Positions 27,512 to 64,000 are shown, counted from the first letter of the stretch. The stretch: 64,000 nucleotides of DNA from Bigelowiella natans CCMP2755 (GCA_000320545.1 ADNK01000431.1:1-64000); one strand, 5' to 3'. Numbers and translations: made by a program. The notes: generated by a model not told the origin, from the letters alone.

Positions 27512-29022
27512 GACGTAATAGTAATCAAGTATGCATACTTGAATGCCCCACTAGTAACATTATTGATTTAATGATGAGTAAGGAACACTACCTGCTGATG
27601 ATGATGCTGCTGCTGTGCCACCTATGGCTGCTGCTGCTGCTGCTGATACTATCTTCGTCATCGTCGTCGTCGTGATATATAATGTAGGACGTGACGAAGA
27701 TGGACTCTCGATCTCTCACAACTCTGCTTCTCATTCGAGATATAATTCATAGGTGCAGGCACACACACACACACACACACACGCGCGCGCATGCACGCGC
27801 GCGCGTGTCGTCCTATGCAAACTACAACCCACCTTCACTCGTTCCGAAACGCCGCCTCCTCCTCCTCTTTTCTCAGTAAAATCCCCTTCTTCTTTCTCCC
27901 CTGCAGAAAAAGGACGGGTGTAGATGATGACGTTCGCAGAACACCAACGAAGCTCAAGCATCATCAACGGGAACCTTCGCCCTCCTCCTCCTCCTCCTCT
28001 CCCTCCCCCCCCACCACAACCACCACCGCCACTTCCTCCTCCTCCTCATCCACCTCCTCCTCCTCCTCGTCCAACACCCTCTCAAACAATCAGGAAAAGC
28101 AGCAGCCCAAACACCGCCGTGTTCCTCCTCGCAACGGCACTTCATTGTCGTCGTCATCGTCATCATCATCATCGATTCAGGGGAAGATTTTCCACCATCA
28201 CAGGCGCTCGGTCAGGCCTCCAGTAGATCAAGAGAGTTGGCGACGAGACGTGCTTAAAGGCGAAACGAAGGTGGTGCTATTAGTGCTATTTGTGCTGCTG
28301 CTGGTGGTGGTGGTGGTGGGAAGGGGGGGGGGGGGGGGTGCGTTGATGGTCATTGTGATACTGATACTCTACATAGTAGTGCCTATGAGAATAAATAATA
28401 AATGCATATAATATATAAATATTTATAGTTAATTATTCATATGCTGTTATCATCATCATCATCATCATCATCATCACCATCACCATCGTCGTCGAAACCA
28501 GGGTTCGGACGGGCGACGATGCACGATTATAAGCGAGATTCTAGACCCGAAGACAAAGCTGCTAATCCAAAGCGGCAGTGTGTCGGATTTCGTCGCTTCT
28601 AATGAGCTGATATCGAAGGCTCTTGCCATGGTAAAACTACTACTACAACAACAACTAGCACTACTAGGAGGAATAGCACATAAGCACTGGGAGGGCTGCT
28701 CTGCTAATAATGAAGATGATGATGATGATGATGACAAACTTGTGCTGATGCTGATTCCACCCACACCATTCACAACAGATGAGGTGTAAGTAATATGCAT
28801 GATGAGCCAGTCAAATGAGCACTGAGTAAATAAGCAATACTGACTTTAGATCAACACACACGCTCGCACACACACGCTCGCATTTCCGAACAATTTCCCA
28901 TCCATCCTGATCGTCAGGTCGCCGAGCGACAAGAGGTAGCCCAGATCTTGCAGGAAATCCTCTCTGCGGAAGGAAACGAAGTGTACATGCGCACAGTCTT
29001 TAGGTTTGTTGTGAAACACACG

Positions 29023-35280: not shown

Positions 35281-36400
35281 TGTCTACACTAGTATGAGAC
35301 GGATGTAATGAAATATTTAAATTTTTCCAATGGTCATCCTAATGTAGCTGTCCACACTAGTACAGCTAGATAGCTGACTAAACTGCTACACTGCTAGCAC
35401 TGCTAGACTGGCACAGTCCAGATGGTCTGGAAATGCATTTGAATGCATGATCGAATGCATCACATGCATGCGACAGCTGTGGCATTGTGTGAAAGTGCAA
35501 AGTGTGCGACGCGCTGCTGATCGATCCGATCCGGAGATGCAATTCTCATGCTGGCATGCTAGCATGGCTGCACCGCTAGCTAAGCTAGACCGCACGTCCA
35601 TCCACAGCCCATGCACACATGTCCCATGATTGCATGTGCACTGAACTAGTGAAGCACATGTGTTGCTACATTGCAAAGCACACATGCTAGCATGAGCTCA
35701 GTCACGTGTATCCCAGAGAACATGTGTTCAGAACCTGGGTGCGCTCTGTAGTCCATGATGGCTACATGTCCATTGTGACGTTGCAGGCTTTGCTTCAGAC
35801 AAGTTGCGCTCGTGTGGCATGTCTGCAGCAGAAATTGCACAGAAACGCTGTCGTGCATGACATGACGACGTGCGATCGGGGAGCGTTCCGAGTGAGTTTG
35901 TTTCTGGCAGTTTCGTGCAGGCTGTCTAGCAGGCCCAGCAAGCACAGAAGTGGAGCCCATTGCACGCACTGGCATGCCAGCATGCAGTCCAGCAGTGCAT
36001 GCCAGCTAGCTAGCCAGCCAGCCAGGTTTGCCCACTTGCGAAGATTGTGGACACCCAATGCCACACGTGCATGTCCATTGTGAAGTGGAAGCTTCGTGTG
36101 CACACAAGACCAGCCAGAAGAGCTGGTGCAGACCCGTGCACAACTCCACCGTGCGTGCACTGCCAAATTGCACTTGCGAATCCAGCACGTGGACACGTCT
36201 GGACGTGTCGCGTGCGTGTGTCGGCACGCGATCGTCCAAACCATTCATCAACAAACTCCATGCTGGCATGGCACGTGACTGCGTGAGGTGCACATGGACA
36301 ACTGTTGACGCGCACACGCACCACGAAATTGGAACAATTTCAAAGCGGTCACACCACATCGTGGTCGCATGCGTGTTGCTCAAACAAGCTATAGCTCTAG
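35281..36400 (-). mobile_element. Heavily mutated LINE 3' relic
   Basis: 35293-35351 (tatgagacggatgtaatgaaatatttaaatttttccaatggtcatcctaatgtagctgt) aligns with 62256-62312 of the intact LINE. Similarity is weaker further in. The right boundary is approximate. Confidence 0.75.
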
Positions 36401-59564: not shown

Positions 59565-61541
59565 ATGAATCAACGTCCCTCGGATAGCTGGGGGAGGGGA
59601 AGAGACTCCGAAGTGGCTCTTTTGAGACGGTGTGTTCAACGAAATTCGTACGTTGCACTGCTCCTTACAGCGATGGCGTCTCTCACGAGACTGCTCCTTG
59701 TTCCACAAATCCCCGGTGCCCGCACGATTGGGAGAGAGGCGATAGGCAAAAATGAGTCGGATCGCCGTAGATATATATCCCCTGCAGATCTGCCAGAGTT
59801 TCCGCCCTTCCGTCGCCCTGTAGAGCGGAGTCGTTATGGAAATAGACACCATTGCAGCATGCCCGTACTACCCGATCATGATGAACGGCTGGTGGCGATC
59901 CAATCACGGTATCGAGGAGATCTGTTGTACTCTATCACAGGCAAAGATAGATCAACTAGTAAGCTCCGTGGGTATCAAGGAGGGGGCGCAAGAGGTCACA
60001 CACAAAGAGCTCGGATGACCGATGATAACGCTTCTTCTGATCCAGCTTCCAGAGGTACCTACCGGAGCGAAAGAAGTTTTTTTGCCATTGGAGATCTTTC
60101 GGAGAAGAATCGCCTTTATGCTAGATGGCTAAGGGCACAGCTACGTGGAGATGAGTCAGAAGCCGAGGATATTCATGAGCTGATCCAGACCACAAAGGAG
60201 GACGAGAAGCGACGGAAGGACGAGGAGGAAGCACAGGGAAAGATACACGGAAACCAGAAGGGCAGAGCTAAGTTGTTTTCACGACAGCAGCAGCAGCGGA
60301 ATAAGGAAAACTTCCAGGATTTATTCGAGAGTTTCTACAAAGAGAGTGGGTCCCGTGCCAACATTGAAATGCTACGTCATAACGATAGCCAAACCAGGAC
60401 GGTGGGAGGTGCAGATGCGGCAGCATCACGCATTCAGAGCAAGCGAGGTTCAATTTTCCAAATGGGTGACACACCGAACTACTTGGACAACGGAAAGGAC
60501 TTTGAAGATCTCGTGCGATTCGCTCTCACTCGGAAGACGACGTCGTCCATGAACATCAGCATCGAAGAGCTCGAGGCCAATGAGAAACGAGACTCATACG
60601 TGAACCACATGAGACCGATGATTGAAGGTGCAAACAGTTTCGTCCCCCCGCCGGAATGGATGGATAATAACGACGAGGGGGGAGGAGGAGGGGATGACGA
60701 GATGCAGCAAGCGGGTGGTGATCAGTATAATCCAGCTGCCTTCACAGGCCTGGCATTCGCACTCGATCCTCGCTCAAATGGTTTCCGATCCGATCTCATC
60801 GTTTCCAGAGGACCTCTTTGCTTCATGGTTCCAACGCTGTATTATCCTTTAGCCCGAGGGCATTGTTGGGTCGTGGCCATTGATACGGACTCGAGATGTA
60901 CAATGGACCTCGAGGACGACGCGCTGGAGGACGTATATAATTACAAGAAGTCGATTGTCAGCATGAACCGTCGGCGGGGCCTGCGCACGGTCTTTTTCGA
61001 GACAGCTGTACAGCTGGAGGGGGCAAAGCGTAGGCCCATCGTGGAGGCTGTCGCCCTACCAGAAAAGTCGTTTGCCAGCTCACGCATCTTTTTCAAAAAA
61101 GCTATGGTTGACGCTGGGAGCGATTGGAACACGGTCTCTGCATCTGGGAAGAAGGTTCTTGAGACCTCGCCAGGAAGGCACCCGCTGGCTCATGTTCTCC
61201 CTCGTGGCGACTTTCCGTATTTCCACGTGGAATTCGAGATGGAGGGGGGCTACGTGCATGTCATCGAGGACGAAGGGCTATTTGATTTGGATTTTGGTCG
61301 CAATGTCCTCACTGGCCTCCTCGGGATAGATGATGCTAACGTCGCTAGCACTTCCTCCGTCCCTTCCCTTTATGACCAGCAGCAGAGAGCGATGGACCTG
61401 AGAACAAGATTCAAGCGGTTCGATTGGACGCCTAGTTACTACGCGCAGGCAGAGAAAGAAGTACAGGAAGAGGGGGGGAATGAAGAAGAAGAAGAAGAAT
61501 TAGGGCGAACCGCACGGAGAACCAAACGTGCGCACAGATGA
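59565..61541 (+). CDS. CWF19L2: Intronless CWF19-like 2 (CwfJ C-terminal domains), divergent, with hydrophobic N-terminal leader
   Basis: 658-aa ORF with PLARGHCWVV, NYKKSIVSM...VFFET, IFFKKAM, FPYFHVEF...GGYVHVIED...FGRNVL and FKRFDWT. Confidence 0.82.
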   Translation: MNQRPSDSWGRGRDSEVALLRRCVQRNSYVALLLTAMASLTRLLLVPQIPGARTIGREAIGKNESDRRRYISPADLPEFPPFRRPVERSRYGNRHHCSMPVLPDHDERLVAIQSRYRGDLLYSITGKDRSTSKLRGYQGGGARGHTQRARMTDDNASSDPASRGTYRSERSFFAIGDLSEKNRLYARWLRAQLRGDESEAEDIHELIQTTKEDEKRRKDEEEAQGKIHGNQKGRAKLFSRQQQQRNKENFQDLFESFYKESGSRANIEMLRHNDSQTRTVGGADAAASRIQSKRGSIFQMGDTPNYLDNGKDFEDLVRFALTRKTTSSMNISIEELEANEKRDSYVNHMRPMIEGANSFVPPPEWMDNNDEGGGGGDDEMQQAGGDQYNPAAFTGLAFALDPRSNGFRSDLIVSRGPLCFMVPTLYYPLARGHCWVVAIDTDSRCTMDLEDDALEDVYNYKKSIVSMNRRRGLRTVFFETAVQLEGAKRRPIVEAVALPEKSFASSRIFFKKAMVDAGSDWNTVSASGKKVLETSPGRHPLAHVLPRGDFPYFHVEFEMEGGYVHVIEDEGLFDLDFGRNVLTGLLGIDDANVASTSSVPSLYDQQQRAMDLRTRFKRFDWTPSYYAQAEKEVQEEGGNEEEEEELGRTARRTKRAHR

Positions 61542-62242
61542 TAGAGGAGACAGCACGGAGAGAGAAGAATTATATGATGAACATCAGCACCAGGTCTGAT
61601 ACAAAAAATTGCGATGCTACGGCCGCCTTTCATCATCTATCATGACTCACGATTTATTTGCGGACATTGCTATGCTAAGCTAGTCGTTCATCTTTTGCTA
61701 GTGCATACATGTAAGCGCGCGCAATATGTAGCCATAAATTATTGATCAAGCGCTCCTGCCTGCCATTGCGCATGATGCAGCAAGGATGTGGACGACCATG
61801 CATCTATTGAAATAAACGTCCACAACACACGAAAGAGACTCAGGAAACAACTGGCGACTGCGATCATGTATGCATAGGTGGGATACATGACACAAGGAAA
61901 CACATCACACTATTGGAATTGGAGCATCGCGCAGCATATGCGTGCTCTATGTACGTTGCATATGTAACATAACACTATTGTAACACATGCTTTTGGTAGT
62001 AGTGTGCTAGCATGGTGCACATCGATCATTGCAGAAATAAACGAACAAATGTAATAACGGGAGCGCTGTAGCGCCGCCGCTGTGCATGGCTAGATAGCTA
62101 CCTGTGAGAGCCTACATATATATAACTACATTATATATATTAGGGCTCTCTCGTACAACCAGGTATACGAACATAAGTAGTTAAGCGCACATGTTCTATT
62201 TTACGTGCACATGTCCCACATATGTTCTAGAGAACTTTGTAC

Positions 62243-64000
62243 GTGAGAGCCTACATATGAGACGGATGTGATGAAGAATCAAATTTTTTCAATGGTAATC
62301 CTGATGTAGCTGTGCAATGCAGCGGCTACAGCGCTAATGTTGCATCTGTTGGTTTCTGCCACAATGTGTTTCATGCATTTGAAAGCGTCCTCATGCGACC
62401 GATGTTGCCGCGCACTGCGCGCAGCAGTTCTGGATTCAATTTCAGCCTTTGTCAACCGGTTCGTGTCGTCGTTGCGATTCATGATCGCGCGCATTTGATT
62501 GCGCAATCTGATTTGTTCTCGACCATGCATTGGACATTGCAGGAGATGATCCATGTCCTTCAGGATGCCACATGCATCGCACGTGGCATCTTCCTCTGTG
62601 CATTGTCCACGTGACAGCATGAATTTGCCAAGATTGCCGACACCACAGATGGCGCGCATCCATGATGTAGCAACACTTGGAAGTTTCAGTTTGATGCCGG
62701 TGATCGAAGATGACGGGAGGAAACCAAGATTCTTGAGATTCACAGCGCGCAATGAATCATTGGACCATTCCTCTTCGAATTCGTTGAAAGCACAAGATTT
62801 CATCACCTTGTGATGTTTTTTCAGTTCTTTTTTCAGCGCCTCTGTTGTCGCCAAAACGGTGGGCAATTCGTCACCTAACAAGTCGTCAGTGATCGATTTG
62901 AGCCGTCGAAACAAGGATGCTTTGTTCCACGTGTGTGTGGGCACATCAATCCACGATGTGCCATCTGACACTTTTCGATTTTCAATGATGAAGCCATAAC
63001 TGCTCCAATCATTTATTCCCTCATGGATTTGAGGACCGCTGCCTGTGTCGATCCATGCGTTAGTGCGTAACCATGATTTAGCACACTGCACTTTAGTTTG
63101 ATATCGGGGTGGCAACGTGCCAGTGAGGACGTGGGGGACGTCGTTGGAGATGGATCCAGGTAATCCCAATATACGTTTCAGGGTTTGGGATTCCATGGAA
63201 TCCATCTGTTTTATTCGTATGTTTCTTCGTGATCTCCATATTGGAGCAGCGTATCTGCTGGATGCAAGGAACCATGATTTGTAAAATTTCAGTCTGACGT
63301 TTAGCGGTACAAGGTGTCTGGAATAACACAACCTTAACAAAAACCTTCGCTTCTTTTGCAATCTCAGGTGAGAAGCAAGAGCATGTTTTTCAAAGGTTAA
63401 TTTGTTGTCGAAGATTAGTCCGAGACATCTGCCGCTGTCGACTCTTTTTATTTTTCCTTGGAGATTGAGAGAGATGTTCCAGGAGGTTTGGTGTCGGTGG
63501 GCTTTATTTCTTTTGTCAATTATAAGGTACCCGCTCTTGTCCCCATTGAATCGCATCCGCCATTTCATGCACCAGTCCGTCATTTGGTTTAGGTCGGCCT
63601 GGATATCATCTTGCATTTTCCCCCATCGGTTTGGCGAAAACAATTTGTAGGGGGTAACGTCGTCACAGTATATTTGGAAATCTGTGTTGGTAATATGTTC
63701 GTAAATGTCGTAATAGGTTATGAAAAGGAAACAGCTGAGAGATGATCCTTCGGGGACGCCGCTCCCAAGGTTCATGTGCTCAGAGAGAGTATTGCCAAAT
63801 CTGAATCTGGCGGTACGATCTCTGAGCCAGTCGTCGATCCACAGCAATAGCGAGCCTCGTATTCCGTATTTGTCATGTAACTTGCGTATCATGCCGGAAT
63901 GCCAGGCTTTTGGATAAGCTTTAGAGGCATCTGTAAACAACAGGATGGCTGCAAGCTTTTTGTTATATACTCCATCCTCGATTGACTGCGTCATCTTTGT
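62243..64000 (-). mobile_element. Non-LTR retrotransposon (LINE), 3' part: RT domain, thumb, CCHC-type knuckle and short 3' tail; continues beyond window
   Basis: Open ORF 63994-62279 with D.SKAY, GVPEGSSLS, YCDD, LGLIFD.KLTF..H and C..C...DHLLQC. Confidence 0.93.

Follow-up and report, generated by a model that had tools for sequence, protein, structure and literature searches.

Hypermutation at the dinucleotide TpA is known from Bigelowiella natans, where Mettrop et al. found, in mutation-accumulation lines, A-to-G and T-to-C changes only at TpA (bioRxiv 10.64898/2026.01.13.699255). The rate was raised ~1,000-fold over background in two inserts, one from a giant virus and one from a virophage, in some lines only, and new TpA mutations arose in growing cultures at ~1e-7 to 1e-6 per site per generation (bioRxiv 10.64898/2026.01.13.699255). 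The new mutations lay in integrated single-copy viral DNA of mitotic lines; the ADAT2-like adenine deaminase Bn78255 was put forward as the candidate enzyme, and the targeting rule was left open, with RNA guidance suggested (bioRxiv 10.64898/2026.01.13.699255). Coding sequences depleted in TpA were enriched for reverse-transcriptase and endonuclease-reverse-transcriptase domains (bioRxiv 10.64898/2026.01.13.699255).

We analyzed a nearly TpA-free stretch at the 3' end of a LINE retrotransposon of B. natans CCMP2755, located in a window of 64,000 nt (ADNK01000431.1:1-64000), the whole stretch of DNA that was analyzed. The stretch is very probably the inherited footprint of B. natans TpA-to-CpA/TpG hypermutation on the 3' 740 nt of the LINE master lineage. 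The process itself is already known, being the same TpA hypermutation as in the preprint, so the mutator that a preliminary description of this DNA had considered possibly undescribed has in fact been reported (bioRxiv 10.64898/2026.01.13.699255).

The element and its TpA-poor 3' end

The following features of the element and its surroundings were used.

62257-67217 on contig C3306, minus strand: non-LTR retrotransposon (LINE), full length 4,961 nt, with its 3' 1,744 nt in the window (62257-64000); identified by the shared 3' end, 5'-truncated copies, a full-length match to the copy on contig C1193, and APE and RT domains in ORF2
62279-65773 on the contig, minus strand: ORF2, 1,164 aa (Exo_endo_phos_2, 9e-18; RVT_1, 7e-18), with its C-terminal 573 aa in the window (62279-64000)
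62257-62996, minus strand: TpA-erased 3'-terminal zone, 740 nt with 6 TA, inherited family-wide (about 2 TA in 62337-62996 in most of 30 copies; TA/CA/TG variation at 26 sites)
62307-62308 (GTAG), 62327 (CTAC), 62335 (CTAA), 62668 (GTAG) and 62876 (CTAA), unstranded: five family-wide surviving TAs, all in poorly converted contexts
62296-62297, unstranded: sixth TA (GTAA), private to the window copy; its siblings have GA on the sense strand
62001-62256, unstranded: 3' flank of the LINE, TA-rich (26 TA in 62001-62200), with no in-place hypermutation at the window locus
59565-61541, plus strand: neighbouring intronless ORF, 658 aa, with CwfJ C-terminal domains 1 and 2

The limits of the LINE were fixed by alignment with the full-length sibling on C1193, and element positions (e) are counted from the 5' end as 67218 minus the contig coordinate. 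Copies end at a single common 3' terminus ~22 nt past the stop codon and have varied 5' truncation points, which, together with the AP-endonuclease and reverse-transcriptase domains in ORF2, identifies an APE-type non-LTR retrotransposon. The upstream ORF of the LINE (480 aa) matched no Pfam family. The window copy is inserted in a TA-rich palindromic stretch (window 62100-62256), a portion of which recurs on either side of the LINE, and the DNA between the CwfJ-domain ORF and the LINE is TA-rich and untouched. At the 3' junctions of six other copies (L003, L012, L021, L024, L025 and L028), the flanks often open with (AT)n or strictly alternating purine/pyrimidine strings, and resemble a (TA)n target or tail in which some TA has become CA/TG.

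The interval 62337-62996 holds 2 TpA (gTAg at 62668 and cTAa at 62876), and 63001-63660 holds 29 by exact count, in agreement with the hand count of the preliminary description (2 against about 29); the Poisson probability of at most 2 TpA with 29 expected is 1.2e-10. Among 660-nt intervals of the 64 kb, TA is at its minimum here (3-4 TA; an interval at 35.7 kb follows with 5 TA), and the depleted zone extends past 62337 to the LINE 3' end at 62257. TpA depletion is coupled to a gain of CpA and TpG: TA falls to 3 per kb in the erased zone from 53 per kb upstream in ORF2, CA+TG rises to 203 from 142 per kb, and the TA deficit (~50 per kb) roughly equals the CA+TG excess (~61 per kb). CpG is not depleted (11-16 per 200 nt), as the earlier reading had noted. 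That reading had also pointed to ~230 aa lacking Tyr, and the C-terminal 220 aa of ORF2 indeed contain only the boundary Tyr of WSSY (upstream, Tyr makes up 4.0%), with Cys at 3.6% compared with 1.3% upstream.

Two plus-strand ORFs lie in the erased zone (62312-62614, 100 aa, and 62553-62813, 86 aa), which are best read as by-products of the missing TAA and TAG in TA-free DNA. The window contains other TA-poor islands at 35400-36390 (17 TA and 240 CA+TG per 1,001 nt) and 27900-28250 (2 TA per 351 nt). A tblastn search of ORF2 against the rest of the window, these islands included, found no similarity.

Conversion of TpA in sibling copies

Copies of the family were collected from the 91.4-Mb genome using the last 722 nt of the LINE as a query, which gave at least 44 scored matches and 989 first-look candidates. 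About 60 of the ~990 candidate 3' fragments were read, and 30 copies, 86-99.7% identical, were aligned. In the older copies L017 and L015, differences fall mostly on TA dinucleotides. Compared with the window copy, L017 has 54 of 61 differences on TA, of which 53 are transitions (30 A-to-G and 23 T-to-C), and L015 has 61 of 70 on TA, of which 60 are T-to-C or A-to-G; in both copies, then, the changes are almost only A-to-G or T-to-C at TpA.

The direction of change follows from sites at which CA in one copy corresponds to TG in another. A single change separates either state from TA, and two changes separate CA from TG. In pairwise comparisons of old copies, such CA/TG discordance occurs at 20.4 per kb, compared with ~1 control double transition per pair, and the copies have no pattern in common. 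Therefore TA is ancestral and the copies were converted independently. Among 448 site-by-copy outcomes, 389 are CA or TG, 44 are retained TA and 15 are other states; both strands are struck, with 168 CA and 221 TG. The claim that a TpA-specific T:A-to-C:G mutator operates in this genome is thus borne out by the sibling copies, on both strands and with no stop codons created. The change would most likely result from adenine deamination in a 5'-TA context on either strand, by an enzyme of the kind that the preprint proposes.

Conversion depends on the flanking bases. In saturated copies, CTAC/GTAG was retained in 56% and CTAA/TTAG in 22% of cases, compared with 0-8% in the other classes, values that come from few sites repeated across seven copies; the tested conversion sites include no CTAG. 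The preliminary description had placed both surviving TAs of 62337-62996 in a spared CTA/TAG context, and this held: GTAG and CTAA belong to the poorly converted classes.

Recent conversions are concentrated immediately 5' of the erased zone, in a front defined as follows.

62997-63282, minus strand: front zone; the window copy retains all of its 14 TA sites, whereas one or more 99%-identical siblings have a conversion at 11 of them

In 17 young copies, 11 of the 14 sites of this front (up to 290 nt 5' of the erased zone) were struck, at 20 of 210 opportunities, whereas further 5' only 1 of 64 sites was struck, at 1 of 728 opportunities (Fisher 5e-10). Young copies were also struck at TAs still left in the tail, mainly at the 3'-terminal ones (3 of 7 sites). 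In one young copy, L016, the only changes in a 220-nt front patch are seven TA conversions. This patch, and the TG of L016 at 63170, a position at which the old copies all have CA, led to the rejection of gene conversion from old copies as the source of the front conversions. The 3' end is also the most repeated part of the element, with the 989 first-look candidates compared with 23 for a mid-ORF2 query and 17 for a 5' query. Dosage alone fails to explain the step at the front, because copy number shifts modestly across it while the conversion rate shifts ~70-fold.

The window copy and the full-length copy on C1193 are separated by 68 TA conversions and by 9 changes that do not involve TA. 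In the C1193 copy, conversions rise from ~e2700 to near saturation at e4400 in a 3' zone, a second zone at the 5' end (e1-900) shows a strand bias with 13 A-to-G and 3 T-to-C changes (p = 0.02), and none of the 95 sites between the two zones is converted; the two-ended gradient is a feature of this one copy. When a second 5' hot zone was sought in three young copies, only the first TA (element position 13) was converted, in one copy. The copy on C2133 is truncated, and its 5' stretch is unalignable. The first 310 nt of the window copy (C3306 66907-67217; L031 4907-5217) are TA-poor, with TA/(TA+CA+TG) of 0.08 compared with 0.15-0.38 in the body, and this may represent inherited erosion of the 5' end.

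The time at which the mutator acts is given by L026 and L027, which are segmental duplicates of one truncated insertion plus its flanks. They differ by 41 substitutions, 33 of which are TA-type, 10 in the element and 23 in the first 440 nt of the 3' flank; the 1.2 kb of 5' flank contain no TA-type difference despite 107 TA. Several of the differences are CA-vs-TG double differences, and therefore both duplicates were struck. Mutation thus acts after integration, on chromosomal DNA within limited regions. Spill-over into the flank was seen in this one duplicate pair, and most hypermutated copies have normal TA density in their flanks. Two young TA-rich copies, L014 and L008 (on C2494 and C3064), lie in surroundings that are nearly TA-free over 0.8-1.2 kb, and L014 has two conversions only, at 3'-terminal TAs. 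These copies were inserted into already hypermutated territory without triggering hypermutation of the new copy. The neighbourhood alone is therefore no trigger, because some young TA-rich copies sit in TA-free surroundings.

A 3'-to-5' gradient resembles the cDNA editing gradients of APOBEC3-type enzymes. The polarity could accordingly have been made during retrotransposition, with the RNA or first-strand cDNA edited from its 3' end first, as in APOBEC3G gradients, and the copies born with 3' conversions. The confinement of young-copy conversions to the last 1 kb, the TA-normal flanks of hypermutated copies and the stepwise erosion of the master lineage at the 3' end only all speak for this. 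Against it, L026 and L027 diverged at TA after integration, flank included, and the C1193 copy has a 5' zone too; the preprint, moreover, measured new mutations in integrated single-copy viral DNA (bioRxiv 10.64898/2026.01.13.699255). We consider editing during retrotransposition unlikely.

The polarity would instead fit action on the integrated copy, in which conversion would start at the LINE 3' end, consume the TA sites that it meets first on the 5' side of the erased zone and proceed 0.3-2 kb inward, with a second zone at the 5' end in one copy and spill into the 3' flank in one duplicate pair. Nucleation at the 3' end and spreading along the DNA would account for this pattern. More specifically, and tentatively, the mutator may be nucleated at the LINE ends, chiefly at the 3' end, which is the most repeated part, the body being transcribed antisense and spliced. 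From there it may spread 0.3-2 kb inward, so that the active lineage would be struck repeatedly and would survive, as no stop codons are made, both recoded by and coexisting with a genome-defence mutator. We regard this scheme as possible rather than probable.

Inheritance of the erased tail

The preliminary description interpreted the zone as hypermutation in progress in the window copy, entering from the neighbouring gene's 3' gap or terminator. The copies show otherwise. The equivalent of 62337-62996 has 1-5 TA in each of the 30 aligned copies, and the erased tail has mostly the same CA/TG choices across the ~30 copies sampled. The equivalent of 63001-63660 has 23-29 TA in 11 young copies that span it and 0-3 in eight older copies. 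Compared with its 99%-identical siblings, the window copy has no private TA conversion. There is no hypermutation in place at the window locus, and the window copy is a young daughter that has not itself been mutated. The same zone is found in copies at some 30 other loci, tied to the LINE's own 3' end, so its position close to the 3' gap of the neighbouring gene is incidental. Alignment of genomic copies, the check that had been proposed, did return the expected copy-specific boundaries and changes on both strands, but the boundaries run from the LINE 3' end and a link to the flanking terminator is not supported.

The tail itself retains traces of the mutator. CA/TG discordance between old copies is 6.6 per kb in the erased tail, one third of the neighbouring value and well above control, and at this low level the state is therefore mostly inherited. 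At 26 sites of the 740-nt tail the copies differ in having TA, CA or TG, a density of 35 per kb that is similar in magnitude to the 53 TA per kb upstream. The five family-kept tail TAs are all CTAC/GTAG or CTAA/TTAG, classes to which 8 of 51 TAs belong further up the window copy (P ~1e-4). Sorted by codon phase, to look for selection on the choice between CA and TG in the inherited tail, synonymous outcomes stand at ~2:1 in phase 2-3 and lack this excess in phase 3|1. Older copies still have TA at some sites of the zone, and two sites divide even the young family.

62966-62967, minus strand: CA/TG-split site in the 99% family; the window copy and four siblings have sense CA, other siblings TG
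62528-62529, minus strand: likewise a CA/TG-split site in the 99% family

As the siblings are split between CA and TG at these two sites, TA was still there in the ancestor of the young family. The tail was therefore eroded stepwise in the copy-producing line of descent. Most of this would have taken place before the oldest sampled copies arose, followed by small later steps.

Three more distant relatives were searched for an un-erased tail: L058 (on C607), an 86%-identical copy of this family, and L061 (on C994) and L062 (C3248:62000-64000), which represent sister families with 74% and 60% aa identity to ORF2. None has one, and all three are TA-free over the homologous region. The relatives give no ancestral TA states, and the pre-erasure sequence of the tail is accordingly inferred.

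Stepwise erosion has to be weighed against a single-step origin of the tail, in which the active lineage would have taken it over from a dead and fully hypermutated copy through recombination or template switching. The boundary of the family zone is very sharp at 62997, and 3' fragments, as potential partners, are the most abundant part of the element by the candidate counts given above. The TAs kept at some zone sites by older copies and the CA/TG splits of the young family at 62966 and 62528 show, however, that erosion went on stepwise, and no donor lineage was found. A one-step origin is thus unlikely, even though most of the tail could have come from one recombination event with such a dead copy.

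It is also conceivable that the tail never had TA, as an intrinsic, selected property such as RNA structure or stability at the 3' end for priming of reverse transcription. All copies have the zone in common, and the 3' UTR is only ~22 nt, so the end of the ORF must serve as the 3' recognition region. This explanation is very improbable: the 26 variable sites include CA-vs-TG double differences that require a TA ancestor, the excess of CA+TG roughly matches the deficit of TA, the survivors lie exactly in the refractory contexts of the mutator, and dead copies lose TA likewise over the rest of the ORF. The preliminary description had held that a TpA-free segment shared by all copies, active ones included, would identify an intrinsic property of the element. 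The sharing is literally what was found, yet the segment is very probably a fossil of the mutator rather than a neutral intrinsic property. Finally, in-place, ongoing hypermutation of the window copy from the neighbouring gene's 3' gap agrees with the sharp boundary at 62997, with survivors in spared contexts and with the entry of the process from the 3' end in other copies, but it is extremely improbable given the same boundary and mostly the same CA/TG states in ~30 copies at unrelated loci, a window copy that has no conversion of its own and a 3' flank that is TA-rich up to the LINE end.

Activity of the family and comparison with known systems

The inherited footprint is carried by a LINE family that is active or very recently active. 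Over 722 nt of mid-ORF2, and likewise in the 5' part, 10-13 copies are 100% identical; the same 1,179-aa open frame is found in at least nine copies; and contigs from RNA runs span the LINE end to end. No in-frame stop can arise from TA-to-CA/TG conversion, and DNA that lacks TA also lacks TAA and TAG on both strands. For this reason the old hypermutated copies keep long open frames, of 1,173-1,198 aa. In the master lineage, ORF2 would have stayed open in the same way, so that the lineage could have kept retrotransposing and its daughters would all have inherited the erased tail.

We also considered whether the C3248 family is a TA-free yet active "immunised" sister family, and this was rejected, its copies being 82-93% alike, as for independently mutated dead copies. 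The 1,173-aa open frame of the C3248 family is a by-product of TA-free DNA.

The LINE family is transcribed in antisense as well.

63527-63592, plus strand: intron of an antisense, multiply spliced LINE-family RNA, seen in RNA runs only; a second intron lies at 63654-63716 and at least 13 more lie beyond the window

Two RNA runs from different studies show at least 15 GT..AG introns of 63-274 nt over contig positions 63527-66991 (L031 1524-4992), antisense to the LINE ORFs, and the DNA runs lack them. None of these introns, at least 15 in number, lies in the TpA-erased zone. Sense and antisense family RNA together would allow dsRNA, a possible fit with the RNA guidance suggested in the preprint.

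These results have several consequences. The mutator need not kill a transposon, as this family still multiplies with 740 nt of its coding tail erased; by the same token, a long open frame does not mark a TA-free copy as active, nor does hypermutation mark a copy as dead. The 3'-anchored polarity with its steep front constrains models of target choice, and if it reflects RNA-guided targeting, the LINE family would be a natural read-out of the targeting rule. The poor conversion of CTAC/GTAG and CTAA/TTAG is a testable specificity for any candidate deaminase.

AID somatic hypermutation provides an analogy, as its mutations strike both strands, stay within 1-2 kb and form a gradient that begins at a fixed point. 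The base deaminated by AID is cytosine, in WRC contexts of immunoglobulin genes. The LINE case differs in having no demonstrated link to transcription start sites.

ADAR and APOBEC3 share with the LINE case deaminase-type transitions and a preference for the 5' neighbour (for ADAR, U before the edited A, according to the preprint). They differ in that the LINE is struck about equally on both strands, after integration, flank DNA included, and with near-absolute TA specificity. Editing by ADAR at the RNA level would give A-to-G on the sense strand only, fixed at retrotransposition; the changes found are on both strands, arise after duplication and extend into the flank.

Fungal RIP is likewise a dinucleotide-specific transition hypermutation of chromosomal DNA, on both strands and aimed at transposons. 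RIP, however, converts CpA to TpA and creates stops, whereas in the LINE case TpA is destroyed and no stops are possible. C-to-T change at CpA with a rise in TpA and stops was not found among the copies, in which TA is ancestral and hypermutated copies keep frames of up to 1,198 aa. Fungal RIP also needs duplication and a premeiotic stage, whereas in the preprint single-copy DNA was struck in mitotic lines.

The closest described system is the TpA hypermutation of B. natans, and it agrees with the LINE case in its TpA-only transitions, its action on both strands of chromosomal DNA, its regional clusters and the loss of TpA with a gain of CpA+TpG. The preprint covers giant-virus and virophage inserts and genome-wide dinucleotide statistics, and its text does not deal with a retrotransposon, a gradient, flanking bases or CTAG (bioRxiv 10.64898/2026.01.13.699255). 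What is new at the LINE locus is an active family that inherits an erased segment, the 3'-anchored polarity, the refractory classes CTAC/GTAG and CTAA/TTAG, and the proof by a duplicate pair that the mutator acts after integration.
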